Assembly (NCBI GenBank): GCA_010909165.1
Contig: MU008166.1
Coordinates: forward strand, 620,001-684,000
From: Anthoceros angustus
Taxonomy: Eukaryota > Plantae > Anthocerotophyta
Direction: 5' to 3'
Length of the DNA: 64,000 bases
Shown: positions 1,618-33,540 of the stretch, one piece after another
Numbering within the stretch: position 1 is the stretch's first letter
How the letters are laid out: each line of letters opens with the position of its first letter
Position numbers and translations under genes: made by a program
The notes under the pieces: generated by a model
What the model saw: the letters and a program-made list of their open reading frames with translations, nothing else
What the model was told of the DNA's origin: nothing
Databases searched by the model: none

Positions 1618-1620
1618 TTT

Positions 1621-3455: not shown

Positions 3456-3499
3456 CCAACTATGCGTTGGGACTACACCGGTAGTTATGGCGATACTCG

Positions 3500-6830: not shown

Positions 6831-8949
6831 GGAGGAAGGATATGTTTGACTTGGAGCGGAGATACGTGCAGGGAGACACCCACGAACGGAGGGATACACC
6901 TCAAGATACCTGGGGAGGATGAGAAGGAGAAATTCCCATTCGCACATATTTCGTGGTCGATGAAGAGGACGACACGGAGAGATATTCCCATTCCATCAAC
7001 CTATTAGGGTGCTATGGAGTCACAATTGACAACCCGGTGGTCGGGAGGAGGATCCGAGAAGGTGGGACGGAGGTCGAGGAACAGAAGTAGAGGTGGGCGG
7101 GAGGGGCCTTGTCTGGACAAACGGAGGGATACACCTCAAGATACCTGGGGAGAGGATGAGAAGGAGAAATTCCCATTCGCACATATTTCGTGGTCGATGA
7201 AGAGGACGACACGGAGAGATATTCCCATTCCATCAACCTATTAGGGTGCTATGGAGTCACAATTGACAACCCGGAGGAGGATCGACCGAGGCTGGACGGA
7301 GGTCGAGGAACAGAAGTAGAGGTGGTCGAGCCGGGAGCGACGATCCGACAAACTGAGGGTGCGAGGAGGGTGTCTCACGTTTACCTCGACGACCTATTAG
7401 AATGGGGAATGCGTGAAGGAGAACCAAGACAGGGGAGGAAGGGTTGACATCACACATCACATGGGTGGAAAGAGAGTGGGTGCAGACGGATGAGGTCAAG
7501 GATGTGGAGGTGTTGCACAGGAAAGTCCTTAAGTTTTCGAGCAGGATGAATGCGAGACTTGGAAAGGGGATGAAACATTGGCGGAATTTATACATGTTTT
7601 GCTTTTGACGTTACGGACATGAAGGGTATACCGAGGGAGTGGGGAGCACAAGATTGATCTCGAGCGTGTGCCGGTCCGGATACCGCAATACAAGCTAAAT
7701 CAAAGTATTTGAAGGTAAAGGCAGTTGGAGCTCTACTTGCGTGCAGCGTATATCCTATCCTACTAGAAATGGCCCCTATGTTACGATCGTTGTTGCAATT
7801 TTATGTTACACTTGTAACTTGCAACATCATTTGGAGCTTAGTATTAAGTTTGTCATTTCTTTCCGCATTGGGCCTACAATCTTAACACGAACCTTGCTCT
7901 CTCTCCTACCACTTCACCCTCTTAACTACATCCCTCTCTCATACGCATTGTTTATGAATTCCCTCATGCAAATGCAACATGTATAACAAGGACCCTCTCT
8001 CTCTTCTCTATCGGTCCCCTCTTTATTACACCCCATTGGAAGTACAATTAGTTAATGTTTTTCCTATTGCTCTTCATTGCACTCTCTCTTCACAACTATT
8101 GTTAATGGCGCCAAACGGATATCACTAACATGGATATCACACTAACATGCTCATTAATTGTCTCTCATTAATTGTCTCCTTCCTCTACCACAGAACCATA
8201 ATTCCTATATCAACCTTTTCCCTACCATAGCTATTATTGGCTTGTATACTAATTGTTTATGGCTTACCATAGCTATTATTGGCTTGTATACTATTTGTTT
8301 ATGGCTTTTGCACGATATCGGTAGAGATAGAATACACATTACCTTCATAATGCATGTACCTACTTGTAGATACGGATTTACCTTCATACGTCTGGTACCT
8401 ACTTGTAGGTAGGTATTTGTACATGAACACGGATTATCTGATATTTTTATTTCGATACTGGATATATCGCACATTCTTGGCCGCCGTTACCTCTTGTTCT
8501 TGCGGTTGCAAAATCGCTTCGGCGACCGGCTTGTTCGTCACCATCCTCCTCCACTCCACCAACGCGAGTGCATGGACAACTAGGTTCCTTTATACATACA
8601 TACCTTGATGTCACAGAATTGGGAAAGGGTGGTACATGAGGACTAATCCCATGCTTTTGTCCGTACCCATGAGCAATGGCGTCGTCGTTTCCCCAACCCG
8701 TCTGCTGGTCGTCTTTTCACACATGCAGAAACCTAGCAATCGTGCTTCAACCCACACCTACCGGCAATTCTCGTGTCACAAAGCGGCAATGTCACAATTA
8801 TGCATTCTTGAGTCATCGATTCGGGGCAGCCACAAGCTTCTCCCTTTCGCCTTCACATCACCAGCTGCGAGAACCACATTCATCTAGATGGCGGCTAACT
8901 CATCGAAGCCCTCACTTTCTTCCTACATAAAACTAAATCCTATGCTACT

Positions 8950-10232
8950 TAGGCTTCTTGCAGACACCCCTACACTCATTGGTTGTCCTCGGAGGATTCT
9001 TCTTCTTCTTCCGTGTAGAACCCGTTCTTCCTTTGCTTGTTGGTGTCATGCTTGGTGCCCGCTTTCTCTTCCCTTGCTCACGCCTCCACGCTGCGTTTCC
9101 ACACATCCTTCCACAGCTTCCTTCTTTTACGACCACCATTGCAAAAGCAGTATCGATGTTCGCCCATTGCATCACCATTTGCATGACATGTTACACATTT
9201 GCCCTTACACTTTTCGACACGCTCCGTGTGATCCTCCGTGTCGGTGCCACCACTTCCACCGCTGTTGTCCCCCCTTCTTCCAGCTGCCCACCAGCAACTG
9301 TCTTCCCTCCCTCTCCCTCGTTGTCCCCCCCACCCTCTTCAACGCCTGCATGTGTACTGTCCCCTCGCCTCTGTCCATTGCTTCCCTCTTGCATTCCCGT
9401 CTCCAAGCATCCTGCACATGCCACTCCAGGTGATCACATCAGTCGACAAGCGTTGCCTCGCCCACTTGCCCTCTCACTGCCACCGTCATGCCTTTTCCCT
9501 TACCTCTCCAATACTCGGCATGTTCTCCAAGCCATTCCTCGCTGCCCACGCAGCTCCTCTTCGCTCCCTCCCCACCGTTGCACGAACTTCCTTTCAAAAT
9601 CTTTCGCCCTAGTGGACCAAAGGATTGGTCCCTTGATCATGCTTTTGGCCTTGCAGGCGTTGCGGCGGCTTCTTTGAGGTGTTGGCCACACCCCCATTCT
9701 TGTGCAACGTCACCACCCCACTCCACGGCCTTCCTCCATGCCTTCGTTGTGACATTCGGCGGATGGAGCCATTTCGCATCCTTACCCTTCTCCCTCCATA
9801 TCAATGCAGCTTGCCTCACCTTCTTCCCTACGTTGTGGTTCCTTGTCCGTGATGCACCTGCAAACCTCGCCACAATCTCATCCCGGTCGATACCTGGAAA
9901 CTCAATCTCTACCATACTCACCAGCCTCTCCCTCAGACTCTCGTCATGGCTTGTCCACGGCACCATCAACGTCATCTTCGCACACACTAGCTCCAAGACA
10001 CGCTGATGGAAGGCCCTCCTCAACAGTCCTTCTTCATCCTCCACCGCATCAGCCTGATCCGCATTTTCGACCCAACCTCCATCGCGTGGTGACGATATAA
10101 ACACTCCTCCCTTGGAGCACACTGTCTGATGATAGCGTCGTCGAGTTGCTTCAGCGTGGTGAGTTCTCCTATCTCTGCCGGAGTTGCGGTGGTGGGGGCG
10201 TCGTCTGTCACCCGTTCTTCCATGTCACCCAC
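8950..10232 (-). pseudogene. TnpA/ORF2-like protein of the outer CACTA element, copy 1 (frameshifted)
   Basis: ORF 9637-10122: W...RLVSMVEIEFPGI...F...RTR...HPPNVTTKAWRKAVEW, then DFERKFVQRWG and a charged coiled-coil-like tail; pattern shared with ORFs at 18615-19001 and 30360-31066. Confidence 0.55.
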
Positions 10233-11393
10233 CTCGGCCTCATCCTCGCATTGTCCTCGTCCTCGCCATTTCCATCCGCCTCGAGTCGGCCGTCTCGGCC
10301 TCGGGCTTGCCCCTCAACCCTGTCCTCATCTCCCACATCCGGTGTTCTTCACGGTGGAGGTCGGGAGCATGCCCTTCCTCCCTTGGCTCGCGTGCACCTC
10401 GCTCGCATTGCCGTCGGCATAGTGGTGCACTTCTCGGAGGCGGGATGGGCCCAGTGGGCGCACTTGCTAGGGCATCCATGCCACAAGGGCGGGGGACCGA
10501 TGTTCGCTCATCCCGAGGACCAGCCACCTGCTCCACGGGAAGGGCCACCTCCTGCCACTCCAGAGGACCAAAAAACCCCTCTGGAGCAGCCAGCAACTGG
10601 CCCATAGGAGCGGGTGCGCTCCCCTCCCCGGCAGGGGGTTGATGGTGGGAAGCATCTTCCTTCCCATCCCCACCCTCGACAGGGGCAACTTGCTGGGCAT
10701 CGCCATCACCTGCCTCCTCCGCAACCTTGGAAGGGACACTTGCCTGCCCATCTTCATGGTGGCGCTCCCCAGGTCTGTTGTCACCTGTGCCACCCTCCGC
10801 CACGCCCTCTCCTGTCGTCTCAGATGGAGCTGCCCCGGCCTCTATGGGTCCACCCACCGTTTCCACCTCCCGGCCTTCGCCGTTTCCCACCGCCGGAGCC
10901 GTGACACTTCCATGACCACTGTGCCGCTGCGCACAGGGTCCCCTTTCACTCGCGAGTGCTTGCCCACCACCAGCCAGCCACCATCGCCATTGCGCCACCT
11001 GCGGCGGGCGCCCTCCTTTTGCGGCCGACGCCATCTTCACCGGCGGTGTGTCACGGCGGTTGAAGTCGGTGCCGAACTTAGGCGGGGACCTCGGCCAAAT
11101 CCTCAAGTCCACGTCCCACACCATCTTTGTAACGCGCAAAGTCGAAGCGAGCGAGGCGGCAAGAGACAAGCGATTGCAACGCAAGGTGACGATTGAAAAG
11201 ATGCAAGTGGAAGTAACACCATGATGACGGTCGAAGTAATAGGCCATGTCTCCGGACGCATGCGATGCCGCGATCTGCCATGCGCCGCGCGTCGCCATTC
11301 AAAGTTGCCACCTCATCGCCTTCCCTTATGTCTCAACTCCTCATTATAACAAGTGGGACCTAATCAAGCGATGACCACACTTATCACTCGTAG

Positions 11394-12950
11394 ACATATA
11401 TAGTCACCAAATTCGCACACACATTTGACGGCCAAGAACATTCCAGTCATTTCGAGGGCCGAGGACATATGCTCCGCTTGTCATTGCCCAAGGAACTATT
11501 TGTCCTTGGGCCTCGATATCGTCCATGTCATGGCCCATGGTCATGTCATGTCAATAACATGCATATACATGTCATGGCCCACGGACATGACATGACCATG
11601 ACATGCTATATGCATGACATGGTCCAAGGAAACATTTTCATTGGACCATGTCATGTATATATCATTTCATCGCATGACATTTATATACATGCCATGGGCC
11701 AAGGACAAAGTTGTCCTTGGCCCATGACGTATCATGTCATGGGCCAAGGACAACTTTGTCCTTGGCCCATGGCATGTATATAAATGTCATGTCATATATG
11801 CATATGCATGTCCTGCATACGACATGCATATGCCGTCATGCGAAGGACAAAGTTTTCCTTGGCCCATGACATCCATATGCATGTCATGTGCCAAGCACAA
11901 CTTTGTCCTTGGCCCATGGCATGTATATGCATGTCATGGTTAAGACCATGCCATGCATTTACATGTCATGGGCCAAGCTCAAAGTTGTCCTTGGCCCATG
12001 ACAACTAGGCCCATCCCCATGCATGTTTGGCCACCTCATCATGCGCTCCTTGTGTTTTAAGTCCTCATAATAGCATGTCCTCCCAAATGAAGTCTACACC
12101 ACTCATGATTGCTATACATATATAGACACCAATATGTGCCTTGCCTTTCCGTGGGCCAAGGACAAATTTGTCCTTCGCCCATGACATGAATTTACATGTC
12201 TGGGCGGGGACAATTTGTCCTTGGCCCATATGAAAATTTATGTCTGGCCACACCATGCCATGCATAAGTTCGTGGGCCAAGGACAAATGTGTCCTTGGCC
12301 CACGAATGGCGTTCATGTCCTGGTCTTGACCATGCCATGCATTGCCATGGGCCAAGGACAAAGTTGTCCTGCCCATGAAACGCCTTGTAATATACATGTC
12401 ATGGCCCAAGGACAAATTTGTCCATGGCAATTATATAAATGTCCTTGGCCCATTATATAAATGTCATGCGCGACATTTACATGCATATACATTTCATGGT
12501 CAAAGGAAAAATGTTTCCTTGGACCATCACATGCATATGCATGTCATGGTCATATCATGTCCTTGGCCCATGACATGTATATGCACGTCATGGGCCAAGG
12601 ACATGACAGCGGCATGACCGCATGCACATGTCGAGGCCCAAGGACAAATAAATCCTTGTGCAATGACGAGGTCGCATTTGTCCTTGGCCCTCGAAATGCC
12701 GGCGAATGTGCTTGGCCGTCGCTATGTGTGGCGAGATATTCGTGACTATATGTTCGGCCATGACATGTAAATGCATGCCATGGTCAAGCCCATGACATGC
12801 ATATACATGTCATGGCCCAATCATCGATGTCCGTGGACCATGTCATGCATGTACATGTCATGGCGGAAGGACAAATGACACCACGGACATGGGCATTTCC
12901 CAATCCAAGGACCATGACATGCATTGACTCATCATGGACCAAAGACAATC
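11394..12950. repeat. Palindromic motif array with long inverted arms (foldback-like)
   Basis: Many TGTCCTTGGCCCATG / CATGGGCCAAGGACA units in both orientations; perfect 16-bp stems at 11693-11726 and 11738-11771; arms ~11394-11545 and ~12600-12753 are inverted copies. Confidence 0.9.
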
Positions 12951-14089
12951 CCGGTGACCACGAGACACGTTTCGTGTCGTCACCCTTGTGAGGCACCTCG
13001 GTGCAAGCGGTGTGCATCGTGGATAGCGTGGGTGTGAAATGAATATGTGTCATCCGGTCATTACAAAGCGTGCACTTGGGGTGTGCCATGATCCTAGGCC
13101 ATCCATCTGCTTGCACCATTGTCAAGGTTTATACATTACTTGTTCGATGTCTGTGATTGTACATTGTTAATTATGCTTACCTCACGAAAACCCGCTACTC
13201 ACGTCCATGGGCGACACCACCGCCAAAGGTCGCCATGGCGAGACGGGCTTTCGTGTGTGGCGTCAATGCACACCTGCCACGCCGCCTGAGCAGACGGTCG
13301 ATATCGCAGATTCTCCCAGCGTAAACCGATGTTCCGGAGGCACGGTTGCGTGTAGAAATCGGCTCTTCTCCGAGATTTGCTTTAACTACGAACTCACGGT
13401 CTTGTGAAAAGCTCCAGCTCTTGCTTAAGTCTCCTCCCTGCGGTTTGAGGCCTACCGTGAACCCCATCACTCCCCTCCACCCCTCCCCACCCAGCGTCTC
13501 CACCGTTCCTCTCCTCCCCACCCCGCCCCCCCCTTGGCGGGGCACGGTATGCGAGCCCTCGTCCCTAGTGTCCACAGCGGATGTGCGAGGCGGATCTGAC
13601 TTCCGCGTTCCTACATCTTGAATGGGTTGGGCATCTCGGCTTGCACTTTGGACACCTCCACGGCTGTCGATGGCCGTCGAGGACCCGGTGGCTGTGTGCG
13701 TGTGTGTATCCTCGCCCTTTTTGGAACCCCGTTCCAATGGCCAAGTGGAAGCCTCCCAACGCCTTGGGTTCGTGTCTCGACCACCCGGCCGGATCTCGGG
13801 GCCGTGGGGTTGGTGTGTGTGTGCGTCCATGACCAGTGCGGCCCAAGGTGTCGGCACGATTCACCCTTTTCACTCATTGCGTTCAATAGTTTTTGGTTCA
13901 CGCATGCGGCCGCCTTTTCCTTCCGTGCTCAACTATCTTCTTCCAACATTGCGGTGTGTGCGGAGGTTGTGGGCTCCTATAGATAGGCACCGAGTATGGC
14001 TATGAAGGATTGGACGGCGGGCCATGTCACGATGGCCATCAGGGCGATGGACGGAAGGTTGCTCTCCGTCCATTGCCCGAAGGGACGGA

Positions 14090-14600
14090 AGGTTGCTCTC
14101 GTCTGCCATCAAGGACTGGTATGCACGGTCCTCGCTCCCACAGGCTGTCTCTTCATAGGTACATCTTTGGTGGAGGGAGGAGGTGTACACCTCGGAGGTC
14201 GAGGTCGAGTGCGGCGATGTAGCGCCCGGAATGTCCTTTCCGGCAACTAGAATCTGTACACTTGGTGTGGGCTGGAAATAATAAAGCAGGCGCTGTGAGG
14301 TGGTTGGCGGAATGGAGGGTATGGGTGGTGCCTCCATGCAGGCGGACACCACAGCAACCCGGCGTCCGCGACATTTCCGTGTTACGTGGGTCATGATTGC
14401 CTTCAATTTATTGTGCCTTGGTGAGGATGGACATGAATTAAACAAAGGCTACTAATTCCGCACCTATTGCCCAAAACGTAAGGTCACCGCTCTAAAAGGG
14501 CAGTGCGGAATGTGTCGCGATGCGACACATGGACCCGTTAGGAAAGGAAGGAGTTCATATCCGCAGCCGAAAGAAAGGGCGAAGGTCCAAAGGAAGGCGA
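14090..14600 (-). pseudogene. Possible Ulp1/C48-like cysteine protease remnant
   Basis: Read across frameshifts: LLPF...H..FRAVTL...AFVFNS...VPMKRQPVG(S)ED(C)AYQSL, resembling H / D-S / Q...C ordering; the Cys needs an indel correction. Confidence 0.3.
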
Positions 14601-15714
14601 AGGCCAAGGGAGCCGCGAGGCGATGCGTCGAGGCCATCGTCCAGTGAGGCGAAGGAAGGAAATCGAGGCGTGGTTGAATGCGCGGATGCGGGGCTCTCTG
14701 CTCAAGCGGGCACCCCTCAGGCGAGGGGACTCCACTTGGGAAGAAGAGGCACACGGAGACCAGGCTGAAATTCTTGCAAAGGCTGCACGAAGTCGGAGAT
14801 GTTGTGCGATCTAAGTCGTCTGTTTTGGGCAGAATGAAGCTGCAGATGTGGAGGGTTCACATCGGATGCCATACTGTGGATGAAGATCCATTGAGCATGG
14901 ACACAGAGGGAGGACGGGCGGCATGGGACGCGATTTGCAGCCATTGGGTGCGGTGGTTTTGGGCTTGTTTTCGCGCTTGGGAGCTCTCTGAGATTTCGAG
15001 AGCATGAGCTCCACGCTTTCCCGTAGACAAAGTGCGATAAAGGAGGTTATGCACACTAGCGATGGTGGCTGCACGAAATGTTTTGCCTTTCACCGCATTC
15101 TTGACACAAGGCATGACACCGTCAATGTCGTGGCGGTCGCCAAACATATGACATTGAATGTTGCACGAGTGGAGTCACCCACGGCGGGCGAACCGTTCCG
15201 ACCGTTGTCCCCAACCTCGATATCGACCGTCATCCCTTTCTATCCATCGTTCGCCCCAGGCGGGTGGGTGTGGCGTGACGGCCAGGCGTCCATCCGGAAG
15301 ACATCTCGTGTTGAACTCGTCTTCCACGGCACTCTGCGGGGCTGACGGTAATCAAACACGGACCCACAAGTCCGTTCCATGCCACTCGATGGCTCGGGGT
15401 CGGTCTGGCGGTGGCATTTGGCGTCGAGACATCTTGGTGATGTCTCGCGCTTGATCAGTGAGAACACCATAGGGTCTTGTCGGAGGCTTCCATTGTCGAC
15501 ACGCCATATGCGGATGCTTTAGCTCTGCGGCGCATCTCGGGCTCCTGTTCCCAGGCAGGTCGGTCGTGAGTCCGGTCACGCGTCCATGGTGAAGCATTTC
15601 TTACGCGGCGAGACTTCTTTTGTTCGAATGGGCTTATTTGTTTGAAGTCGCGGAAGCGCTTCCATTTTGAAGTTCTTCCTCCCTTGATTCTTCTTCGCGT
15701 CATCCACAGTCACG

Positions 15715-16376
15715 GTGGGAGAATGCCACGAATCTGATCGTGTGTACAGCCCTTGCCGAGAGTGCGTCACGGTCGCGGGGCCGTATTCGACTCACGTCTC
15801 GAGTTCATTGCCTTCGCCAAGTAATGCAAGCGGCGGTGATGCGGACCATTGTGACCTTCGATCTGCTCCATATGGTTCAATTGTTGTGGTTAATGGCGGC
15901 CGCCCATGCAATAATTGCGGGGCGATGGGCATGGGCAGCCGTATGGTGGGCACCATGCATCCGCCGGACACGGTGTCACATATGTCCAGGGCACCGTCAG
16001 CAGTGGCGATGCTAAGTGATAGCGGAATTAGACAATTCGGAAGAGGCGGATGGTGAGACTTGCCCACCGGGTACCACGGTGGATGAGTTGTTGGCGACCG
16101 ACCACAGGCGGAGCAGGAGAAGCGATGCGGCTGCGTCTTGGCGGCGGTGAAACGCCCTTATCGACATCCCGAAGATGGTTGAAGGAGCGGGCTAAGCGCC
16201 ACACTCTTATTATTGTCTTGGCAATCAATGTATGACATCGATGGCGTCATCATGGCGGGACTTTTCTTGACTAATTACCCGATATTACGCCACCAGATAC
16301 GCCCAAAGACATGTACGAGGCCAAGGCACTTTTTACATGTTTGGGCCAAAGTGAGAAAATCCACTAGAGAGGGATG
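15715..16376 (+). pseudogene. 5' part of the outer CACTA transposase (TnpD/Tnp2-like)
   Basis: RVYSPCREC (transposase-associated zinc motif), then ...PKDMYEAK...KIH...G-C cut off at the nested CACTA terminus. Confidence 0.65.
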
Positions 16377-18399
16377 CACTACTACAAAATGGCGGTTATG
16401 GCGGAATTAAAGACATGGGAGAGATGATTCAGGTGGGAAAATGACAGCTACATTTGCCGAGCAATTCGTGATATGGTAGTCATTGAAATCGTGCTCGATT
16501 TGAATGGCGATCTCAACGTGCTTACATCTGCCGATTCACGTTTTGAGTTCCGTTAGTTGGACCACTCTCTCACTTGCGTGCAATGGTAGATAATTTCAGG
16601 GGTTGCGGTCGGATGGGGCGTTGTCGGTGATGATGAAATGGGCCGTCGTCGCCCCCCTCCCACGGCACCCACCTCCTCCATCCGTCCGCCTTGTGTGGTC
16701 CCCCTTGCGGGAGGCGCCCGTGGACAAGAGCCGGCACAGCCAGGTGTTTGGCATCTTGCTGTGGTCGGTCAACCTTTGACTGGGTGAAGCGTAGCCGCTC
16801 TGGTCAGGTCATCATGTTCAGTGTCATGCTTCTGGCGCACTTGTCCATTTCCACGCTGGCAGCCAGATACGTGTGGGAAATGGGTTCCATCAAATAAAAA
16901 ACATTCAGAATCGGATTTGGCTGATGCGAGGTTGTTGCAACAAGCGAGATTACCCAGCGCAAACTTAGCATACCTCCAGACTACATCTAAACGGTGTTAC
17001 AATTATTTGTTAGGAACCACATAAGATAACCCGATCCAATTAAGGTAATACAATGACCTCCAAAAGTCGGAAGAAACCCTCTCCGGTAGGACCTCACATA
17101 TCGTCTCGAACACCTTGGGTGGCGACTACGCCATCCGTAAACCCTCCCACCCTCCCATGACATTTCAATCTGATCATGCTTCCAGGCGCGCCTCCAAAAT
17201 GTCCTTAGTTACGCCTTCATCTTCCGCTGGCCTTCCTTGCGTGTGCATTCCTTTCGTTTCTTGAAGGCAATCGAGTTCCGCCTAGCGGCCGCCCGCCATC
17301 CCATGCCCCTACAAGTTCCTCTGCTTCTCCAGACCGCAAGGCCTGCCTGGTTATCCTGCGGGTGGGAGTGCCAATGACATCCTGCGTTTCATGGACAATG
17401 TCCACGGCCGAGATTCAAGTTGGGCGTTGTCCGGAGTCCGTCCAGATCCTTTGCCCGCGGCCACTTTCTCTCCTCCTCAGCTTATTCGCCTCGCATTATC
17501 GTGAGCCACCGACATCCCGCTGCCGTTTCTTCGAGCATCGCTTGCTTGCACACCAGAGCAAGAAGCCAGAATCGCCAGCACACCCGCACACCATCGACAC
17601 ATGCCAAATCAACAATACACACTAGCACCCTCCGGTGATTCCTTGGTGGCACACTAAAAACCATGTCCCACCGGGTCGATCTATCAGGCCTTTCAACGAC
17701 CTTAGCTTGGAGGAGCACCGAAAATATACCTGCCCTCCGAGCGCTCCCATCCGTTTCCAGGGCGCCCCCTCCTACAAACGAGTACACACCACCCGCTTAG
17801 TTCCCCTTTCCATATTCATGCAATGCATGGTACAAAGCATGACGGGTGGAGTGTACATCGTATATTCGATGACACCAGACACAACAATGTCGTCGACACG
17901 GTAGAAAGCCCGTGCACATTGGGACCTTGCATTATCATCTCAATGGCAAAATACAGGTGCATTCCTTACCTCTATGACTCACCACCGCTGCAAGAGCACC
18001 ACCCCCACCATCCCGGCCATTGTTGCAGTTCCGTTGTCGGTGAAGCGAGAGAACCACCAAAGCCCACACTTTCCAGCAGTCCTCCCCGAGTTGGATACCG
18101 TGGGCACTTACCTATTGTTCCTCCCTCTCCGTTTGATGGAGCTCCTATTTCCACTGCAATATGATGCCAGTGCAAGGGTTAGTCCATGAGTCCATGTGTC
18201 ACAACGAAACTCTCACCAGGTGTTTCCAGTCACCACTATTCTCGCATCTTGAAGGACAGTCTGCGACATGTGTACCTGTTGCTCCCTCGCTTCCACCTCC
18301 AGCCGATTGTCCTGTAACTAAAAATCAGGAAACGTTTAGGTTAGCCAGAATGGTATATCGCGCACACCACATCACGACATGACCCAGCTGGAAGCACAA

Positions 18400-19100
18400 C
18401 TAACAAAGATTTTCCTCACGTCGCCTCCCTCCGTTGGCAGCCCAGTATACGGGCATCCTGTCCAGACCGTGCTTCGCAGCCCACTGCACCTCCAAGACGG
18501 ATGGTTCTTGGCCATACATGTCCTCGAATCGGCGTCTAAAGTCCTGTCCACCGCCCCGACCAAATGGATTTGTCCCGGCTGTCCCATGTTTGTCCTTCCT
18601 TGCCTCCACTGCAGTCATCTGCGGACATCTTGGCCAGCTCCCATGCCCGCCTCGTATTGCGTGACTCCCCACTCGATTGTTGTCCACCACACTTCAGGAG
18701 TCACTGAGTCAGGGCGTAGCCGCGCAACTGGTGTCCTCTTCCCCAACGTCCTAAGAATCCGTGCCCCCTTCTTCACCCTTTGCAAGTGGTTGTAGCACCT
18801 AGCCCGTGTGCAATTGGAGAACTTTGTGCGGATGACTTCCTTGTTTGTGATCGACGGGTACTCCTCGGCCACCTTGTCCACCAGGTCTAGTCGAAGCGCG
18901 ATGTCATGCATCGTCCAGCACTTCAGAAACTGTAGCTTTGAGGCCACCGCCTCGGATTCTTTTTCGGATGGCTTCTCCGCCTCAAAGACGCTAGCGGACA
19001 TGTCTGCCCAACCTTAGCGGCCTCATCATACAGCTTGCTTGCCAACGTCGATATCCTCTGATGCCCATGGACCTTGATGAGTTTGCGGATCACATCGTGC
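18400..19100 (-). pseudogene. TnpA/ORF2-like protein of the inner CACTA element
   Basis: W...LRLDLVDKVAEEYPSI...KFSNCTRAR...RPDSVTPEVWWTTIEW, then DFRRRFEDMYGQEP. Confidence 0.55.
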
Positions 19101-21679
19101 AGGCCTCGATGAGCTCGATAACACCGCAAAGCAAAGAACCTCGATTCTCCTTGGGAGCCCTGCTCATGACCGTCACGCATGGAAGTCATGCGGTCACGCT
19201 GCCGCCATCTTCCCCGCATGTCCAGGTGATGTCATCCTCGTTTTCCGACCACTGGCCTCTTCTCGCCTGCGCATTGTTGCTAGCCCATCCGGCGAATCCA
19301 GCCAGTGCCCACCCGCAGCCATTACTTCCTCTTCCGGCCTTGCTTCCGATATGCCGGTGGCTACGGCAGATTCCACTTCCCTCGGAGTCGGCGTCTCTGT
19401 TCCAGGCCACCTAGCCCCTTCCGCCAGCACGGGAACCCGCCGAGGTGTGGGCTGATGGTAACACCACACAGTGACCAGACAAGGAGTTGTGAGCAGCAAG
19501 CGCTTACCTTGTTTGAAATTCGGAAGTGCATGTCCAGCGGGGGCATGCGCTGGCAGGGTGAGCAGAAGGGGGAGGGGGAGCGGGAGGCGCACGGAGGAGG
19601 GAAAGGGCAGGGGATGGGATGACGCGAGCGGAGCCGTACGCCTGCGCCTGCAGGTGTTGCTTATGGTCCCGCTCTGCCTCGAGTTCCCATGCCGGGATGT
19701 GGCATGGCGCCTCCGGGCTTCCCACAATCCGCACCGAGCTCAAGTCTACATAGAACTCATGCGTGGGCGGATCGGGAGGAGGCTTGGCTGCCTCCACCTC
19801 GGTCGACTGCGGCAGGCCGACATCCCCAGCCCTCCAAGGTGGAGGTCCGGGATGACGCTGCAGCGGACGGGGGCCTCTCGGTCTTCCACCTTCATCACCC
19901 GCACTGCCTCAAAGATCCCAGACGGGTCCTTGGCGGCCTGCGCCAACGCCCCTCGGCAAACCCTTCCATCCAACCCACGCGCTCTGGCGACTCCCCATCT
20001 TCCAAGCTCTTTGAGATGGCGCGTGTATTTGAGTTGCAGCCAACCTCACGACTCGCTGAGGCTAGAGCAAATCCGGGGCCGCCATGTGTGCTTGCTGACG
20101 GCAACTGCTCACGGACATCCTGCCTCCTCCATGTCGGGACCCGGCGTCTGCCACCTGGTGTTGATAACGCCCGACGGCGCTCTGCTGCAGACGCTCGCCT
20201 CATGAGCATCACCAACTGTGCCCAGCCGAGGCGGATTGCTTTCGCCAGATCCTCATCCATGCATGCCTCAGTTGCATTCAAACGGTCTGGCTGCGGGCAT
20301 GCCACCATGCTGAGGGCGATGGCCGCAGATAGCTCATCCGGGTCCGCATCCATGGGCCTTCCCTGCAAGGCGAGTGGAGGGCGAAAGCCTAACATAGCGC
20401 TCTCGAGAGCAGCCGCGGTCACAAACGCCATAAGGAGGAGAACTTCGAAGGCGTCGGTGCGAGAAGGCGGTGTCCAAATGGGAAGGAGCCCGCGTTTTGG
20501 GCATGCAGACAGGGGAATGGCCGGTTTGGGCCGACAAAATGATGGCCCACATCCCATAAATGGTTGGAGTAATTGCCGCCTACCATGTACTCTGAACATT
20601 CATGTCGAGCAATCGATTCCGTAGGATGCTGAGTCCTCCACTACCCGCCCTTCCGAACACTAAACACATTCCTACTTCCACTTCCACTACATGGGCCCGA
20701 GATGGTCACCTCGGACACCTTATCAAGGCAATACAATATGTGTGTACATGTTGAGGAACACAGTCCATGCAACCCAGACGCCGGACCAGACCATGGAGTC
20801 CGGCACACTGCGTAATCACAGCATCCAACTTCCCGCCCACTCCATGACCTCCTTCCGTGGTGCCTAGTTGGGAGGACGCGAAGAACAGTTTCCGCCGCAC
20901 CACCGCCATGTGGTTACGTGGTTGTGTAAGAGTCGGAGGTGGGTGTTGGTGGGGCGCCCGCGCTTGCAAAATCGGTATGGGTGCTTGCGAATCCATATGC
21001 CAATTTGAGATATGGATTGCCTGCCGCATCTTCAGACGCGCCCTGGTTGTGCGGGAGGCCCCGGTGTGTGACCTTCCAGAAGTTTCGTGCCCACCGAAAG
21101 CGATTTCCCACGATGGCACGCCCATTCCACGAGCTTTCAAAATACGTCGTGAGGCCGCCATCATGTCGGTGTCCGGACCATGGCATTTACAAGTGTCTAC
21201 TACCACGACCCACTGGTGCATGCGTCACGGGCATCACGCCGTAATTTGTTGATCGCCTGCCCGGAAGGCCGAAAAGTGCTATGCGGCACGGGTCAAGTTT
21301 ACATCCGTAGTCCGCATGGATACGCGGACCTTCGCGCGAACTACAATGCCACATTCGGGTCGCGCAGTAATCAAATTCCGCACATTCTACTTGGAATGTG
21401 AACCATGCGATTAATCAAGAACTACCAATGCGCCTCTTTCACACAAAGCAACAACAGCGCCTTCGCGCCAAAACTCCTCCCATTAAGTCCCATGTATACG
21501 TGGAAGGCTTCCTGTCACACCCAAGCTCCTTCGCATCGAGAATATAAACCCCGCACCCGCCCACCTCCCATTTTCAATTCCACTGCGCCTTTGCGGTTAT
21601 AGCCCTGCTCATTCTCTAGCTGAAATCATTCTTCGCAGCGCCTTTTGTGGGATGGAGAGCCGAGATGTTATTGTATCGA

Positions 21680-22964
21680 ATGACCGGTCTTCCGGCCATT
21701 CAAGCGAGAGTGAACCTAGTTCCTCGCCGGCTCCATTACGGACTCGCCTCCGATTCGGGTTCTCGACCCGAAAACCTTATCGCCTTCAACTTCACCCTTC
21801 TCGCCTCTCGATTCACAACTTGCGCAGAGGCCCCCAATCTCAGCTAGTCTGGAGGGCTCCGAGGTGTGGGCTATGAGCAAGCGACGTGTGCAATGCTGAA
21901 TGCCCGTCTTCCTGCGGCTCCGGTCTGGCAGTGGGATCACGCCGTGCCCAACTCTCTCCTGCGGGGACTACGCCATTGCCCTTGCGTTTCGCATCGGAGA
22001 AGTTGAACCACTTGGACTATGGGCCCCCGGTCCCGGCAAGTGGTGCATTCAGCTTGTGGAGCCCTGTGGATTGTTCACCTCGGAGAAATACAATTGGTTC
22101 ACACGACTTTCGACGAACGATGCTGGCCCATGGAATCTGCGGACGAAGGACAAGTGGCAAATTCCCAAGCCTTGGTACGGTGTGATCCGAGTGGGCCGGG
22201 CATGTTAGAACGTGCCAAAGAAATTGGGGACTACGTTGTCGACATTCTGGGAGAGATGAAAAAGCGGGAGGAACCCGTGAAGTTTGCGACACTGGTGGAG
22301 GTGGGGACTCCAGCAACCCATGTGGCCTTCAATTGCCGATTCGGAGCCCACCGGCTGGACATCTGGGTCCAGGAGCTGAACCCATGTTTTGTTGAGGAGA
22401 AGGAGGTGCTGCCGAAGCCTATCACTGGCCAGAACAACTTGAAAGCGGACATCGAGAGCGAGCTGCGGTGGCTGAAGTGGAGCGAGCATGGCGGGAGGAT
22501 GCTTCAGCGGACTGTTGGTCCAAGGTGGGATGAAGAAAGGCTTACGTTGTGGACGGGTCCTCAGGCCGGCTTGAAGAACTTGCTTGCTGCCGCGTGCAAG
22601 GGTGATGGGAAGTTGGCAAAAGAAGTCAATTGACAAGCGGTGCGTGGGTTTTGCCCACAAGCTCCATTTTGTCTACAACCATGTTGAACATTTCCAAGGC
22701 ACATCGATTTCCGTCAACGATGAAGGCATCTACCACATCCTAGAAGCCCGTGATCTAATTGTCAAATGTTGCCACCGCGGCCGGGAAGGAAGGGTCATGC
22801 TCGGTGGTCGGAGCGGTCTTTGCTTTCATGTTTTCCCCACGACCGGCACGCCATTGGAAGTTGATGTGCGTGATGCTCATGTTCGGATTACCTTTTTGGC
22901 TAGCGAAGCCCCAACGCCTTGGTGTATGCAGGATGTTTCAAGATGGCCTCGGCCACCGCTTTAG
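21680..22964 (+). CDS. Uncharacterised cargo ORF of the inner CACTA element (frameshifted, ~400 aa if joined)
   Basis: Overlapping ORFs 21647-21847, 21900-22208, 22019-22633 and 22584-22964 with globular-like composition; TATA-like TATAAA at ~21544; convergent with the transposase. Confidence 0.4.
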
Positions 22965-23185
22965 ACATTTGTGTTAGAAGCCCTTTGTCAGCAATTTGGG
23001 ACCGCAAGCCTCTCACAAGGCTGTTGTGTTTTGTTTGTAGCCCTTTGCTGGGCAGTTTTGTCTAATGGCTTCAAGCCCACCTTGGCCCGCTTTTGCCTCT
23101 TGGTCTCGCCCGAACATTGAACATCCGCCGGACAATCGGTGAACACCGCACATACACACGAGCTTGTGACCCTCGAACCCACTTC

Positions 23186-26100
23186 CTACCCACCGCGAAC
23201 CCGAGCCCTCACCATCATAAGGGCACGCACTCCCGCCTCTACTAAGAAGAGGAGCCCTCCTCTTTCTCTAGTAGTGAATCCCACCGAGATGGGATAGAGT
23301 GCAAATGTACCACCCCGCGCCTGTTCCACATCGGGGTGTGCGAAAGCCTGTTGGATGTGCCGGGCAAATGTGAAGGGCCCCTGCTTTGTGGTCCGTCGAT
23401 ACCTATACACGCGCCTTGTGTCCACTGCCGTGAAACCGCTAATGTCTGGTGCCATGGAGACATGGATTGCGAAGTGTCACGTAAACCACTTGATGAGGAG
23501 GACGAAGCACCGAGGTCGGCACCCTCGAAGGACACGTCTAGGATTTGCTCCACTTGCCCATAAAACTGGACTGGCTGGTCTTCCATGTCAAACGTGCCAA
23601 ACACCCAACTGTCCTGGGTAGAACGGCGGTGTTGATCACCTGCGATGGTGCGGTAGTGGTATCCCATTGTCTCCAATCCCCGGAAACACTTCACCTTCTG
23701 GCGCGGACCGTTCACAAAAGCTCTGATCTCGGTGTAGTCCACACTGGACGCCCATCGGTTTGTTTGCAGACCAGCCTCCAACCAAGTGAGGTAGGTGGAT
23801 GGATTCCGGCCCTCTGCCTCGAACTCACCACGGATTGCTTGCAGTGCTTCAGAGTGCAAAATGAAATGCCGGCACGACGCCGCTCAAGGCCGTAGAGTCT
23901 GGTCTTTGCTTTCCGATAGGGCGCTCATCCGAACGCGGTATTGAGGTTTGGTGGAACAAATGGGCTTGGGCGGGGTTCCCGCCGCCAGTAGTCCGTCGTA
24001 GAACATGCTCTCCGTTGCAAGGTAACCTGTGGCCATGCTCCCTTCCGGCCTTGCTCGTTGCCTGATTGATTGCTTCAGAAACCCTATATGGCATTCAATC
24101 GGGTACATCCAGCGGACATGGACAGTGCCATGCGAGGCCACTTCATCAATCAAATGTATAAACAAGTGCTGCATTGGGTTCCAAAGCACTGACGGGTAAC
24201 ACCGCTCCAATGCCACCATTGTGTTCACAACTTTTGCTCGCATCGCCGGAAGGTCATCTGGGTGTATTGCCTTCTGGCAAATCCACCTGTAAATGGAGGA
24301 AACCTCAATGAAGGACTCGTATTCAGGCCCTGTAAGCCGATGCCGCAATGCAATGGGGAAATAGTATTGCATCAACAGATGCCAGTCGTGACTTTTCAAA
24401 CCCGTGACTTTTGCACCACCAAAACAAGTTGCAAGGTTGGAGCCAAAAGTAGTTGGTGGCCTCATTTTGCATAACTCTGTTTTAACGGCCTGGATGTCCT
24501 CCTTGGACAATGCATAGGACGCTGCGGGCAGATGCGCCTCTTATCACAACGGGCCACAACCGTGGTTTGGAGTCCAAATCCATGAGGTCAATTCTTGCAT
24601 TGTGCGTGTCCCATCGCTGCTCCATACATGCCGAGAACGCTGCGCTTGTTCACCTCCGTGTGCATCACGTCTTTGACCCGAGCTTGAATTGCCGGCGTGT
24701 AAGGCGCTTTTTCAATGAAACCGACATGCGTTTCACACCCTGCACTAGGGTTCGCCGTGCAGACACCGGTGGTGCCCTCTGCCAGCGTCATCTCGTCCAC
24801 AATATCCTCGCACGGTGCGAGAAGGCGGCGGACGGAGCTCTACCGCATTGTCAAAAATTCACGGCCATAGGCTCGCCTCCTGTCATCCAACGAAGGGCAC
24901 CATCGTCGGTGACCATCGCACAACACCTTGTCCAAGGCATTGGACCACCTGGCTTCCAATAACCCACCGCAATCAACACAACACCGGTAGCCTCTGACCT
25001 GCAATCCGAACAGAGCTCCAAGACCAGGGTAATCGCAAGTGGCATGTAGCAGGCCAGCACGTAGCATGAACCAGTGACCTGGGTCGGACAATGGTTTTGA
25101 GTGATCGGCTACAGGAACACCTTCCCACAACATGGCCAGCTCTTCTAATAATGGTTGCAAGTATACATCAACATTCTTTACCTGTTTCGGCCCGGGGATG
25201 ATAATGGGCATTAGTATCCTCTGCCTCTTTGTTGTAAGCCATGGGGGGGGATTATGAATCAACAGAAGCAGTGCCGATGGAATAGGAAGCAGGCCGGTTC
25301 CCATTGGGATTAAAGCCATCAGTGGAAATCCCAAACCGGATATTGCGATCTTCAAGGCCAAAATCACTCACCGAATCCAAAGCCTGCCAAGCGGGTGTGT
25401 CCGCCATGATTCGCAGCTTCCCATCAGTGCTCCTATGGTCCTTCCACCAAGTCAGCTCACTCGCAGTGGCAGGACAAGCAAACATTCTCCGGCTACTGGG
25501 TGGGAAGTAAAACATGGTCGGAACAGCTTGACCAGCCGCTCTAGTTCGGAATCTTGGCTCGCCACAGGTGGCAAGCTTCTGTGATGTAGTAGGACCCCAA
25601 AACAAGCAACAGTCCCCAACGCAAGCATCAATCCAAGCGCTTCCCTGCCCCACATGTAACAACATCTTCCGCACATCCGCCCTAGACTCCGGCATGGTGT
25701 TCTTCACGGGCAAGATTGATGTGGACATAAGCTCAAAAATAGCGGACATTGCTGAGTTGGAAATCTTGAAACGCTCCTGTATGTTGAGGAAGGCTAGAGC
25801 CCGAGTCGTGTGTGCCGGATACTGCCGCAGTGATTGTCCAGAGGTTTCTCGGCCTCACTGTAAGGGATTTTGCCTCTTGCGAGCATTGCGAAACAAAGGC
25901 TTCCATGGCCGGACAAATGCGTGGCTTGATGTTTCCGCCTCCCCACCGGGCCTCAAGCGGTCCGCCCGCCCACCACCACCACCACCGCCAGGACGCGCAG
26001 CTGGTTGAAATCCACGGAGTTCCGGCCACTTTCCACTGTAGCTGCCGGCAGCAATCTCTGCAGGTGGCAAACCATCCGCCTCCGTGCCTCCACGCAATGG

Positions 26101-26342
26101 GACATTGGCATCTTCCAGATCGCCCACATCTCGCTACCGTCAAGCAAAATTGTCAACCAGAGGTATGCAGCCTTCGCAGGACCAGCCACCAAAAATGCAT
26201 GCCTTACCTCCGCAAGGAGCCGAGCCCAGGTGCGCTGATGGCGAGCTGCAATGTCGGCACGAACAGGTGGTGACCGACCTTCACAACCCGGGCAATTGCA
26301 AATAACGCGCGGAATCTGCTTGTTTGCGTGAGGAGGATCCAT
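23186..26342 (-). pseudogene. CACTA transposase (TnpD/Tnp2: Transposase_21-, DUF4218- and DUF4216-like regions) of the inner element, frameshifted
   Basis: RVICNCPGC; IDACVGDCCLF; RNIRFGISTDGFNP; IIPGPKQVKNVDVYLQPLLEEL; CDYPG; DVMHTEVN; GLKSHDWHLLMQ; RWMYPIE...RARPEGSMATGY; FYGQVEQIL. Confidence 0.95.
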
Positions 26343-26810
26343 CAGTCAGGAAAAGCAGTGGCTAGCCATGACAGCAATCGCGTGGCAGCCTCCCCTTATC
26401 TGCCGACGTAACCGGGCACAATGGAGACGTTGAAACGGCATCACAATCTGTCCCCTCTCACCAACGGCCACCCGTCCTTTCAGCCGCAACGGGGCCTCCC
26501 TGTACGGACGCCACCCCAAACCCGTTCCTTGCAACGGCACATTCTGGACAACGTTGGGCTTTCCATTGCAAGGCAACGGTCAACTGAGAACCCACTTGCT
26601 TGACCATGATAATCATCAACCCAACAAAGGTTTAAGCAGCATGTGCACACGAGGATAAGACAAAACCCGGCATCGTCATAACCAACGCACAATGCCTACC
26701 CGGAAAATTGTCATGCACCACATTCTTTGTCTATCTTTTATGACGGACAGTGCGGAAACGAGACCTTGTCATATCCCTCTTGTCATAAATCCGCTCATTT
26801 TGTAGTAGTG

Positions 26811-29170
26811 GTGTTTTATACAGGGGAGAGTACGCCGACTACACGCAGTGCCCAGAATGCGACACACCACGGTTTAGGGAAGGGTTTGATGAGGAAGATG
26901 AAATACCGCGTAAGGTGCTTTGGCATTTTCCGTTGAAGGCACGCCTGCGCGAAATGCCACATACCGAGATGATGACATGGTATGTGGGGAAAGCAGGCCG
27001 GGAGGGACATGACCATCATGGTCGACACCAGCTTGGACAGCTCTTGATGGAGTACGGCTTTGGGGAAGAGCAACGAACGTAAGGTTTGCATTGTGCAGAT
27101 GGCTTCAATCCATTTGGCCACAGTGCGCAAACACATCCATATGGCCGGTTTTGTTGTTCGTGCACAATATGCCACCATGGGCGAGCACAAAGGACGCGAA
27201 TGTGATTATGCCGTTGATTGTGCCGGGGCCTGGCATCGCCAGGAATTTCGATGTCTTTATGGCGCCTTTAATCGAGGACCTGCAGGACCTTTGGAGAGGC
27301 ATGGACACGGAAGACTTCTCCAAACCGTCAACCATCCAAACAGGCATTTCAAACTACGAGCAGCGATTTTGCACGCCATAGCAGACACCAGTTTTGGGAC
27401 TGACGGGATTGCAAGTGAGGGGCCCGTGCATGTGTTGATTCGGGAGGACTTGGATTCACGTATTCTTCGGACTTGAAGAAAGAAATATATGCTGGTTTTA
27501 GGAGGTGGCTTCCGCGGACGACGGACGGTGGATGACGCGGGCTGGTACAATGGAGTGGCGAGTATCGGCCCCACCGCCCGCCATCTTCGTCGATGTCATC
27601 AAGATATGGCGCCGAGTGAACGCGACCGGCGGACTGCGCCATCGAGGCCGGTTTGGAACCGACGGTCGGCCTTGTTTGTAGACCTCCCATCGCGGCGGTT
27701 TTTGAAATGGGCACCAAAGGACGTTATGCACGCCGAGAAAAACAACGCCAAGCCATTTGGCATACGCTGATGAGACCGAGATGACATAGCCTCACGGATG
27801 GACATGGAAGCGAGTGGAGGGAAAGGGTGGTTATGGCCTGTAGGAGAGGATGGCCATTGCCCCCCGGCGGCATATGTCCTGGGTCGAGAGGAACTGAAAC
27901 GGGTTATTGCGGAAATGAAACGCATAAAGCTGCCAACGGGGTACGGATCTAACATAGCTGCGAAAATCGCGAGCGGCAAGGTTGGGAGCCTGAAGTGCCA
28001 TGACTGGCACATAATGATGGAAGTAGTCTTCCCTATTGTCCTCCGAGGGTGCATAGACCCCGATGTGTACAAGGCGGTGGTCAAGTTAGGCCGGTCAGAG
28101 TGGATTTGCCGACAATACCGGCCATGAAATCCAAGCAATGAAAGAGGAGGCAGCGAGGGTGATGTGCGATCCGGAAAAGCCCTCCAAAATGTTTGATATA
28201 TCGACTCACCGATAATCCATCTAGTGGACGAGGTAGGCGGCTCGGACCGGTGCACACGAGGTGGATGTACCGTCGAAAGATACCTTGGGACGAGGAAGGA
28301 CCGTCCGGCAGCGGCGAGGCCGGAGGCCAAGATAGCGAGGGGTACTTGAAGGAGGAGAGCATGCACTATGGGATGGCATTTTGCGGCGTTATTATGGTCA
28401 CGTTGGAGGGCTATGGAGGCGAGCGAGAAGGAGAGAAGGTACTCGGTCCGGGAGGTCAGACAAATTGATGCCGTGGAGGCACGGAAGCGCACACTTATGT
28501 GTTGTACCACATGGAGGTGATGCACGCTTCTAGATATGTACGAGGAAGAGGTCGGAGGTATGGTTCACGTGGAGACCGGCGAACTTTCAAGGTTTGCATG
28601 CGGGAAGGGCTGCCAACGCATGGGAGAATCACCCGGCTATGACGATGAAGTGCGCGCTATCATGGACGGTCCACGAATGGAGGCGAGCTTATCGGCATAT
28701 GTGGAACAAAGGCAGCCACCTTAGAACTATAGGCGGATGAGCGGCGGAGCACTAAGGACAAGGTGCTCGCAAAATTTTTAATGAGCGGGATGAAAGGTAT
28801 GTGGTTGTGAAGGAGAGCGAGTGTTTTATGGTCACATACAGAAATTTTGCGTGCACTGGGAGGAGTACAAGCTGTTATCTTTGAAGGTTCGTTTGAGTGA
28901 GTGTGAGCCGAGTGGACCCGAGCCATCATTGCGGACATCGACACCGGATTCGACCGTGAACATGGAGAGACTTTGCACATACAGAAATTTTGCGTGCACT
29001 TCGGGAGGAGTACAAGCTGTTATCTTTGAAGGTTCGTTGAGTGCAGTGTGAGCCGAGTGGACCCAGGCCATCATTGCGGACATTCGGATTCGACCGGTGA
29101 ACATGGACAGACTTTGCACATACAGGGTGCGCTCCATCGATGGCCCATTTGTGTGGCCCTCACAGGTAAC
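26811..29170 (+). pseudogene. 3' part of the outer CACTA transposase, frameshifted
   Basis: VLYRGEYADYTQCPECDTPRF; SIWPVLLFVHNMPPW...IVPGP...DVFMAPLIEDL; DVMHAEKN; IKLPTGYGSNI...LKCHDWHIMM; GPVHTRWMY; FYGHIQKF. Confidence 0.93.
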
Positions 29171-31200: not shown

Positions 31201-33540
31201 GAAAGGATCGCTGGCCGAATGATATAGAGTTGGAGAAGGATCCCGATCTCGTGGCCTTCCAAGGAGGAGGATAGTGGAATGGGTCAATCCTTCCCGCCGA
31301 CAAGGGGCGCTAGATGTGAGGCGGAAGCCATTCGAGCCGCGGGGAGCCACAAGCATGTGGTGGAGAAAACGCGCACAAATGTGCGGAAGGAAGGACGAAT
31401 GGCGGGGACAACAAGGCGAAGTGGAACCCGACATGGAGAGGGACGCCACGAGGTGAACGATCAACCATGGGAGGACAGGACATCAAGGTGTGTGGTAGGC
31501 CATGGAGCACCAAATGATGTAACAAAAAACAGGGTGCGACCGGCGAGAAGGAAACGCTTACACGGTGGGGCAAACGATGCAAAGCGGCAGCTGTAAGGCG
31601 ATCGACATCGCCGACTATGGCGAGGCGGCGAGGTGGTGGTCCCAGACACCACGAACGGCCGTGGTTGTGGCGTAACATAGCAAAGGGTCATGATCGAGAG
31701 GGGGCATGGTGGGGCATGGGTGCCTCGGGAAAACGGGGCAACGAAGAACATGGTAGGGAGAGGGGCCACCGTAAGTGAGTTGTACATGGGGCCGGTACAC
31801 ATCCGTGGAATGGCGATGCATGGACATCAAGGGTAGTGGCGCAACAGGATGGGCGGATGGACAATGGAGGCGTGAGGGGGGACCGTGGGGTGACGACATG
31901 TGTGCGCAATGGTGCCAAAAACGTTGATCGGGCAGGAATGGAGGCGCGAGATGTAAATGAGACATCTCACACGGGGATCCAGCAGCCTCCAATGGACAGA
32001 TCGACGGCCACGACATGGTGACGATGAGGAAGAGGTGGAGGCGGAGGGGACCGTGGGGTGACGACATGTGTGCGCAATGGTGCCAAAAACGTTGCCTCGG
32101 GGCGGGCGAGGGAATGGGCGCGAGGCAATGAGACATCTCATCACGGGGATCCAGCAGCCTCCAATGGACGGGCCAGGCGTCACGACATGGTGACGATGAG
32201 GAAGAGCACGAGGTGGCGGAAGAGGATGGAGATGTGAACGCGCCTGCCGAACTTTGTACCCGACACATACCGCCGAGCCGATGCCGAGAGCATGGACTGC
32301 AGTGGGCTCCAAAAAGGTGACGCAACCTATGGAGGATGGAGGAGGCCAAGAGGAAAGGAAGGGAATGCCCAAGGCGATGGGGAAGGAAGAGTTACGGCCG
32401 AGGGCGTGGCAGCCAAGGAACGTGACAAGCACGCAATCGGAGGCGGAAGTGGGCGGAAACAAAACAAAGAGAAGGCCGAGAAGGTAAGCTCGCAAATTGC
32501 AACGCACTCGCCAGCGTTATCAAGGGCCATGGAATGGCATGTGGTCATATGTTCTGCAAATCCTGTGAAATGTGGAATCGCGGCTGCACGGAAGGAAAAA
32601 CCAGCAGACCGCTTGAGGAAGGGGAAGGGCAAAATCGGTAGCAGTGTGGGAGGTGCATGCCAGCTGCATGACGAGGAGTAGGCCTTCAAACGAACGGGCG
32701 GGCAACAGAATGCCAACCACAACCCCAATTCACCCCTCCGCGAGGAGGGAGCACGAGGTCGCGGATGGAGATTGCGTTCATTCCTCGCGCGACGAGTGAG
32801 CACGGACACGCGGATGCGGATGCCGGTAGATTCATCCCGCTACCGAGGGAGGACGCCAATTTTGGATGTGGATGCGGCAAAGAACCGCATGTTATCTCGA
32901 GGTGAAACTACGCCTTCGTTGTTCTTGTGGACTAAGGGTTTCCAAAACAAGTACCCTATACGGGACGCCCACAAGGGCACGAAATACGAGTGACGTGAAA
33001 GGCACCGCATAATAGGTGGAAACAACGCGTAAAATTTGCGGTGCCGCACAGTATTGCAAAACGGAGGACAACACATACCACTTGTACGCATAATTTGAAA
33101 AGGCATCGATATAAATTTTGAGTAATGACATCGGGCAATACGTGCACGGAAGCCAAGGCATATTATATACTTATAGTCCGTACACGATAACAATAAAGGC
33201 GGGGAAAACAAAGGAATGAAAGCAATAATGGCAAACCCACATGGGAAGGAGGTTCGGTACCAAGCCTGCAAAACTGGAACATAAGAGGGTGTAACACTTT
33301 GGTTGTTGCAAATATGTTGAAATTTTGAAAGGGCCAAATACCGCCTCTTACTACAATGCAACAAAATTGCAACAAGATCAGAACGCGATTGTAACAAGAT
33401 GGAGGGTTGGTTACCAAGCCCCGACGTAACAAGGGCCAAATAAGTGTAACAAGACCCCACGATTTCAACATAATTGCAACATGGGGGGGTTCAAATCTTA
33501 ACAAAAAGTGTAACATAGGGGGCCATTTCTAGTAGGGTAT

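Follow-up and report, generated by a model that had tools for sequence, protein, structure and literature searches.

Plant elements of the CACTA superfamily have been reviewed as carrying CACTA/CACTG termini, terminal inverted repeats (TIRs) of <50 bp and 3-bp target site duplications (TSDs) (PMC10741241), and in at least one curated work the presence of an intact CACTA motif was made a condition from the outset (PMC8978399). For the wider CMC-Transib group, Kojima described 5'-CA termini "in most cases" and duplications of 2-5 bp (PMC12730594), and DeMarco et al. reported in 2006 animal Transposase_21 elements with CCC-starting TIRs and 2-bp duplications (PMC1636069). The locus described here is part of a 64,000-nucleotide stretch of the genome of Anthoceros angustus (Anthocerotophyta; assembly GCA_010909165.1, contig MU008166.1, positions 620,001 to 684,000), hereafter called the window, and comprises a CACTA-type element of 25.8 kb (7759-33537, the outer element) that ends in CCCTA in place of CACTA. 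Very probably, this interval represents one old and dead copy of a CACTA/En-Spm (CMC) element with CCCTA ends, which was inserted into a resident Ty3/gypsy retrotransposon and in which a canonical CACTA element later became nested. Two lineages of transposase occur in the window, and each goes with a different terminal pentamer: lineage B in the outer element and lineage A in the nested one.

Termini and insertion site of the outer element

When the left end was aligned globally with the reverse-complemented right end, the shared bases were identical (26/26) and two gaps of 1 nt remained in C-runs, one at the tip (CC versus CCC) and one further inside (CCCC versus CCCCC). The left copy is the shorter one in both runs, and similarity fades past ~28 nt. 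These TIRs of 26 and 28 nt fall within the short range typical of the CACTA superfamily (about 10-50 bp) and constitute the top long-range inverted repeat of positions 7000-34500 (blastn-short, E 0.002). In addition, the 15-mer CCCTACTAGAAATGG was found in two inverted occurrences in the window at one mismatch or fewer, compared with 0.07 expected from shuffles. The left boundary reads ...GCGTATATCC TAT and continues with CCTACTAGAAATGGCCCCTATGTTAC... from the first element base, 7759, while the right boundary reads ...GTAACATAGGGGGCCATTTCTAGTAGGG up to the last element base, 33537, and continues with TAT TGTGACATCGGAGTGG.... These results agree with a first-pass annotation of the window, made by a model from the letters alone, which had described ~28-bp CCCTA-type TIRs with the left copy one C short in two homopolymers.

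Instead of the CACTA/CACTG ... TAGTG/CAGTG termini of the superfamily, the outer element shows CCCTA at its right and CCTA at its left end, with C at position 2 of both; likewise, the base preceding CTACTAG is C at both ends. As the same base occupies position 2 on either side, neither a single mutation nor a base-calling slip at one end offers an explanation, and a one-off base error is an unlikely source of this C. The assumption that ordinary CACTA ends were changed in this copy only, be it by mutation or by base-calling error, could refer to the two differences between the arms, which both concern homopolymer length and thus resemble a typical long-read error, but it would demand two independent and identical A-to-C changes, leaving it with a next to negligible probability.

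Deletion of positions 7759-33540 removes 25,782 nt, a number divisible by 3, and joins ...TAT CCT AT/T GTG ACA TCG GAG TGG, which translates as YPIVTSEW; removal of the element together with one TAT hence brings the reverse transcriptase (RT) of the host Ty3/gypsy element back in frame, exactly as the first-pass annotation had read it. Past the junction, the right flank translates as VAPIVVVPKKQKGKIRVCQDWRKLNKVTKKDHYPLP / VAPIVVVPKKQKGKIRVCQDWRKLNKVTKKDHYPLPFID, as is typical of the onset of RVT_1 in Ty3/gypsy elements and of the residues immediately preceding it, and is 43% identical to the RT of a second gypsy element at 41112-41303 (RVT_1, E 6e-38).

The TAT duplication proposed in the same annotation stands insofar as TAT flanks both ends, while a length of strictly 3 bp lacks support, a 2-bp TA duplication being equally possible in this copy. 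Assigning the T at 7758 to the flank gives a 3-bp TSD, TAT, and a left tip that lacks one C; taking it as a mutated first TIR base (TCCTACTAG) gives a 2-bp TSD, TA, and two TIRs of full length. Since either assignment removes the same 25,782 nt, yields the same empty site and restores the same frame, this copy cannot decide the TSD length, which matters because published CCC-ended relatives make 2-bp duplications. The outer element could accordingly be the same element with a left TIR starting at 7758, its first C changed to T, and hence a plant counterpart of the CCC-ended TRC group with 2-bp TSDs. Consistent with this, TCCTACTAGAAATGG matches at 7758 with one mismatch, TA stands before the left and after the right end (the empty site being the same either way), and the Tribolium TRC TIR, CCCTAGTAG..., is accompanied by a 2-bp duplication (PMC1636069). 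However, plant CACTA duplications are 3 bp long and the nested element of this window has the 3-bp flanks ATG/GTG; moreover, at the second difference between the outer TIRs a C-run has likewise lost one C, and this favors an indel over a substitution at the tip.

Transposases of the outer and the nested element

The transposase pseudogene of the outer element was first seen through tblastn searches with pieces of transposase A, which matched 27148-27526 and 27849-28343 on the plus strand, just beyond the right end of the nested element. The open reading frame (ORF) 27013-27378 (+) encodes a Transposase_21 domain with a Pfam E-value of 8.2e-17, above the gathering cut-off, which continues in another frame at 27419-27526; a DUF4218-like region follows at 27849-28343, with a faint Pfam match to DUF4218 on 28163-28465. 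The Transposase_21 domain characteristic of the CACTA/En-Spm (CMC) superfamily is thus present inside the outer element, in the form of a pseudogene: B is split over three frames within blocks that are unbroken in A, and an in-frame stop lies just upstream of its DGFNPF motif. By position, B is the gene belonging to the CCCTA-ended element, and it would represent the matching transposase of these ends. The pieces PKDMYEAKALFTCLGQSEKIH and VLYRGEYADYTQCPECDTPRF, found to the left and right of the nested element, respectively, place the nested insertion in the N-terminal Cys-rich (CxxC / zinc-finger) region of B.

The nested element reads, with its flanks, GATG, CACTACTACAAAATGG ... CATTTTGTAGTAGTG, GTGTTT; its TIRs form a perfect 15-nt pair, CACTACTACAAAATG, which corresponds to nucleotides 1-15 of the left-end motif CACTACTACAAAATGG (16377-16391 and 26796-26810), and the flanking ATG and GTG represent an imperfect 3-bp TSD. 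It is also the insert that the first-pass annotation had subtracted when it estimated ~15.3 kb for the element without its insert, as the remaining parts amount to 8,618 + 6,724 = 15,342 bp. An element with long terminal repeats (LTRs) was ruled out as the insert, since no long direct repeat or LTR pair is present inside. In transposase A, the Transposase_21 domain is distributed over two overlapping ORFs, one at 25255-25854 (E 3e-9) and one at 24843-25367 (E 3e-25). Since the two use different frames while their profile positions follow on from one another, a frameshift must separate them. DUF4218 is located at 23887-24540 (E 1e-23). As both transposases are frameshifted, we concluded that this copy is dead.

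Comparison of B with A revealed collinearity block by block across Transposase_21, DxMH and DUF4218, with 30-50% identity in the conserved blocks. Both proteins contain the short CxxC...PRF motif (CPECDTPRF in B, CGEPRF in A), a Transposase_21 start beginning with TPAW... (50% identity), a Transposase_21 core (48% identity over 60 amino acids), the short motifs F.LRA..LHA and DxMH (KDVMHAEKN in B, KDVMHTEVN in A), and a DUF4218 block (30-34% identity). A similar relationship was observed for the ends, where the outer TIR (CCCTACTA-GAAATGG) and the nested TIR (CACTACTACAAAATGG) are identical at 13/16 aligned positions and differ at position 2, which identifies the outer TIR as a CACTA-type TIR with C for A.

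In a feature- and embedding-based Atlas look-up, the nearest Transposase_21 clusters of B came from nematodes and basidiomycetes, at a recognition score below the threshold of the tool, while those of A came from Streptophyta (feature-based). Because of this sub-threshold score, and because the KDVMH.E.N and DUF4218-like blocks are common to B and the plant-type A, the placement serves only as a lead. As such it points weakly towards the TRC-like version of the element with a 2-bp TA duplication, against which the same shared blocks speak; weighed together with the evidence from the ends, we consider the TA version somewhat unlikely.

Subterminal repeats and internal content

Subterminal repeats of 10-20 bp that resemble binding sites and occur in direct and inverted orientation are the usual arrangement in CACTA elements. 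The outer element follows this pattern: the terminal 540 bp of each end (1.08 kb in total) contain 5 of the 8 window copies of TGTTGCAA, 4 of 5 copies of GTGTAACA and all 3 copies of ATTGCAACA, with motifs in both orientations and at modest copy number. Together with a Transposase_21 pseudogene of its own that is collinear with A, and a TIR that deviates from the canonical one mainly at position 2, these repeats uphold the original assignment to the CACTA superfamily.

The further description of the element as cargo-rich did not hold. Inside the element, 134 ORFs (stop to stop) reach 90 amino acids or more, and Pfam scans covering every one of them detected no captured genes, the only matches being Transposase_21, DUF4218 and one chance-level Mrr_N. 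Long minus-strand ORFs of the 27-33 kb region lie opposite a strongly purine-rich plus strand and are, judged by this composition, probably not genes. The left arm (7759-16376) contains a foldback array, whose units carry motifs of the CATGTCATG type on either side of a GGCCAAGGACAAA.TTTGTCCTTGGCC core and form large foldbacks; apart from this array no recognizable domain was found in the left arm, and tblastx of the arm returned only noise.

Several observations weigh against the assignment of one CACTA/En-Spm copy with CCCTA ends and B as its transposase. The connection between B and CCCTA is one of position, and ~8.5 kb without recognizable content separate the left end from the first recognizable B piece. 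No TnpA-like second ORF (Transposase_24 / Transposase_23) was found by Pfam among the ORFs of at least 90 amino acids, bearing in mind that such proteins are poorly conserved and that this copy has decayed. Furthermore, the basis is a single copy instead of a consensus, its left tip is imperfect (CC, not CCC), and the homopolymer-length differences between the TIRs could be assembly errors.

The missing TnpA-like ORF and the ~8.5 kb of unexplained sequence could equally be cited for a TIR pair from another superfamily with 3-bp duplications, e.g. PIF/Harbinger, in which B would be a passenger or an older nested fragment, as could the fact that Pfam transposases other than Transposase_21 were looked for down to E 0.01. 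We regard this explanation as highly unlikely, given that the outer TIR closely resembles the canonical CACTA TIR of the same window, that Transposase_21 and DUF4218 are the only transposase domains inside, and that no second pair of ends surrounds B. Thus, a CACTA/En-Spm copy with CCCTA ends remains the preferred reading of 7759-33537. The coordinates of its parts are compiled in Table 1.

Table 1. Coordinates of the parts of the outer and the nested element, in positions of the window.
Feature	Coordinates	Strand	Description
Left TSD	7756-7758		TAT; alternatively TA at 7756-7757, with 7758 as mutated first TIR base
Left TIR, outer element	7759-7784	+	CCTACTAGAAATGGCCCCTATGTTAC, 26 nt; one C short at tip, one C short in inner C-run
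Left subterminal region	7785-8000		short repeats of TGTAACA / TGTTGCAA type
Foldback array	11394-12950		palindromic units of ~40-70 nt; left arm of outer element, 1.5 kb
Last B piece before nested insertion	16302-16376	+	PKDMYEAKALFTCLGQSEKIH, then stop or frameshift
Nested canonical CACTA element	16377-26810	-	10,434 bp, ends CACTACTACAAAATGG; found by inverted-repeat blast
Transposase A	23887-25854	-	Transposase_21 on two ORFs, plus DUF4218
Right flank triplet of nested element	26811-26813		GTG; second TSD copy, 1 mismatch versus ATG
Transposase B pseudogene	26813-28465	+	CxxC piece VLYRGEYADYTQCPECDTPRF, Transposase_21, KDVMHAEKN, DUF4218-like region
Right subterminal region	33290-33509		repeated AGTGTAACA / ATTGCAACA motifs
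Right TIR, outer element	33510-33537	-	reverse complement CCCTACTAGAAATGGCCCCCTATGTTAC, 28 nt
Right TSD	33538-33540		TAT

Search for relatives and further copies

Pieces of B and of the host RT were searched separately, not as joined read-throughs. A large protein search used ORF 27048-27473 (+), which lies mostly outside the frame of B; its one match, P0002, is an unrelated Ig-repeat protein, so that this search is uninformative on relatives. A word search with the DUF4218 ORF of A retrieved one ENA fragment with 41% identity; the Transposase_21 ORF of B gave no word-search match within a length window of 0.55-1.75x, which excludes full-length transposases, and the exact look-up of a 352-aa ORF returned no record. 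In a metagenome scan, the 26-base pattern of the outer TIR had 0 matches, and the single match of the TIR 19-mer (L001) was rejected as an AT-rich chance match with no similarity past the 19-mer. Elsewhere in the window, no other fragments of the outer or the nested element were detected, nor were further CACTA/CACTG/CCCTA pairs with TSDs by a motif-anchored scan, which demands perfect TSDs. A literature search for CCCTACTA-type strings yielded primers only.

Surrounding window

The LTR-like repeats of the host Ty3/gypsy element, at 1-3459 and 38382-39911, are ~84% identical, with the left one having grown through tandem duplications in its interior (1099-2001 versus 2559-3459, 94%; 373-1099 versus 1988-2699, 88%). 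This element is old and full of stops. Its gag-side part contains a tandem duplication of ~0.87 kb (4555-5425 versus 5414-6276, 83% identical) and a further one of 0.2 kb (6882-7096 versus 7117-7325, 93%), and its RT region a near-perfect 84-bp tandem duplication at 34108-34267 (70 nt identical, spacing 84). The second, better preserved Ty3/gypsy pol extends over 40671-43349 (+) and includes RVT_1 (E 6e-38), RT_RNaseH_2, Integrase_H2C2, rve and the start of SH3_Tf2-1. Further downstream, a single-exon ORF of 342 amino acids at 52893-53921 (+) encodes a fusion of glutathione S-transferase (GST_N, GST_C) with a C-terminal hemerythrin, the top named matches of which are from Diphasiastrum (48%), Selaginella (44%) and Sphagnum and place the host among non-seed land plants. 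Another ORF, at 60563-61102 (+), matches the P21-Rho-binding (PBD/CRIB) domain (E 7e-6) and is possibly part of a host gene.

Relation to described elements

The angiosperm En/Spm elements against which the first-pass annotation had measured this locus are an unsuitable frame of reference, the host being a non-seed land plant. With plant CACTA/En-Spm elements (maize En/Spm, Tam1, Caspar, Tgm), the outer element shares a Transposase_21 DDE transposase with a DUF4218-like block, TIRs of 26-28 nt that continue past position 2 in a manner typical of the superfamily (CTACTAGAAA), subterminal repeats in two orientations, a size of 15 kb and, if the simpler assignment of the TSD is followed, a 3-bp duplication. 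It differs from them in its outer pentamer, CCCTA instead of CACTA/CACTG, and in its non-seed host; in addition, Transposase_24 was not detected here and B is only 30-50% identical to the transposase of the nested, canonical-ended element. The latter belongs to the same superfamily and genome and resembles the outer element in its collinear transposase and in 13/16 TIR positions, yet has CACTA ends, a transposase of lineage A and Streptophyta neighbors in the Atlas.

The TRC elements (SmTRC1, Tribolium, Aedes; PMC1636069) have in common with the outer element the Transposase_21 domain and the CCC start, which reads CCC at the right and CC or TCC at the left end here. In contrast, TRC elements reside in animals and fungi and make 2-bp duplications, while the duplication at this locus is 3 or 2 bp long and B carries plant-type blocks common to A. 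Comparison of the Tribolium TIR start (CCCTAGTAG; CCCTAGTAGCACC...) with CCCTACTAG of the outer element revealed 8/9 identical positions. This likeness and the work of DeMarco et al. establish CCCTA ends as a known state within the superfamily. As CCC/CCCTA termini of animal relatives were published in 2006, the outer element does not represent a novel type of transposon; what may be new is a land-plant CCCTA lineage beside a canonical lineage in the same genome. Beyond the one copy read here, CCCTA ends would likely be shared by the whole family, with the distinct family of the first-pass annotation as a candidate. A bolder proposal, to which we assign a low probability, is that such elements form a separate old CACTA/CMC lineage of non-seed land plants, with a transposase closer to the animal/fungal TRC than to seed-plant CACTA transposases and with position 2 co-varying with the lineage (A with CACTA, B with CCCTA).

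Proposed history and implications

Based on this arrangement, we propose that the CCCTA element took as its target the RT-coding region of a Ty3/gypsy retrotransposon that was resident before. Binding of its plus-strand DDE transposase of the Transposase_21 type, B, to the TIRs of 26-28 nt and to subterminal TGTAACA/TGCAACA repeats would have been followed by cutting at the termini, and integration through a short staggered cut would have created a duplication of TAT (or TA). The second CACTA element, with CACTACTACAAAATGG ends and a lineage-A transposase, landed in the N-terminal CxxC region of B at a later time. B also gained frameshifts and a stop, and the copy is thus unable to move by itself. 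As its TIRs have remained almost complete, mobilization in trans might still occur, given an intact B-type transposase elsewhere in the genome.

For annotation, the outer element would plausibly be missed by structural tools anchored on CACTA/CACTG, as the first-pass annotation had anticipated. Finders and manual protocols that require these motifs would skip such elements, which could consequently stay unclassified in the genomes of bryophytes, lycophytes and ferns. With respect to mechanism, terminal position 2 is nearly always A in the CMC/Transib/RAG group, in line with its 5'-CA termini (PMC12730594), and two lineages with their own pentamers would lend themselves to a comparison aimed at the transposase residues by which this position is read.

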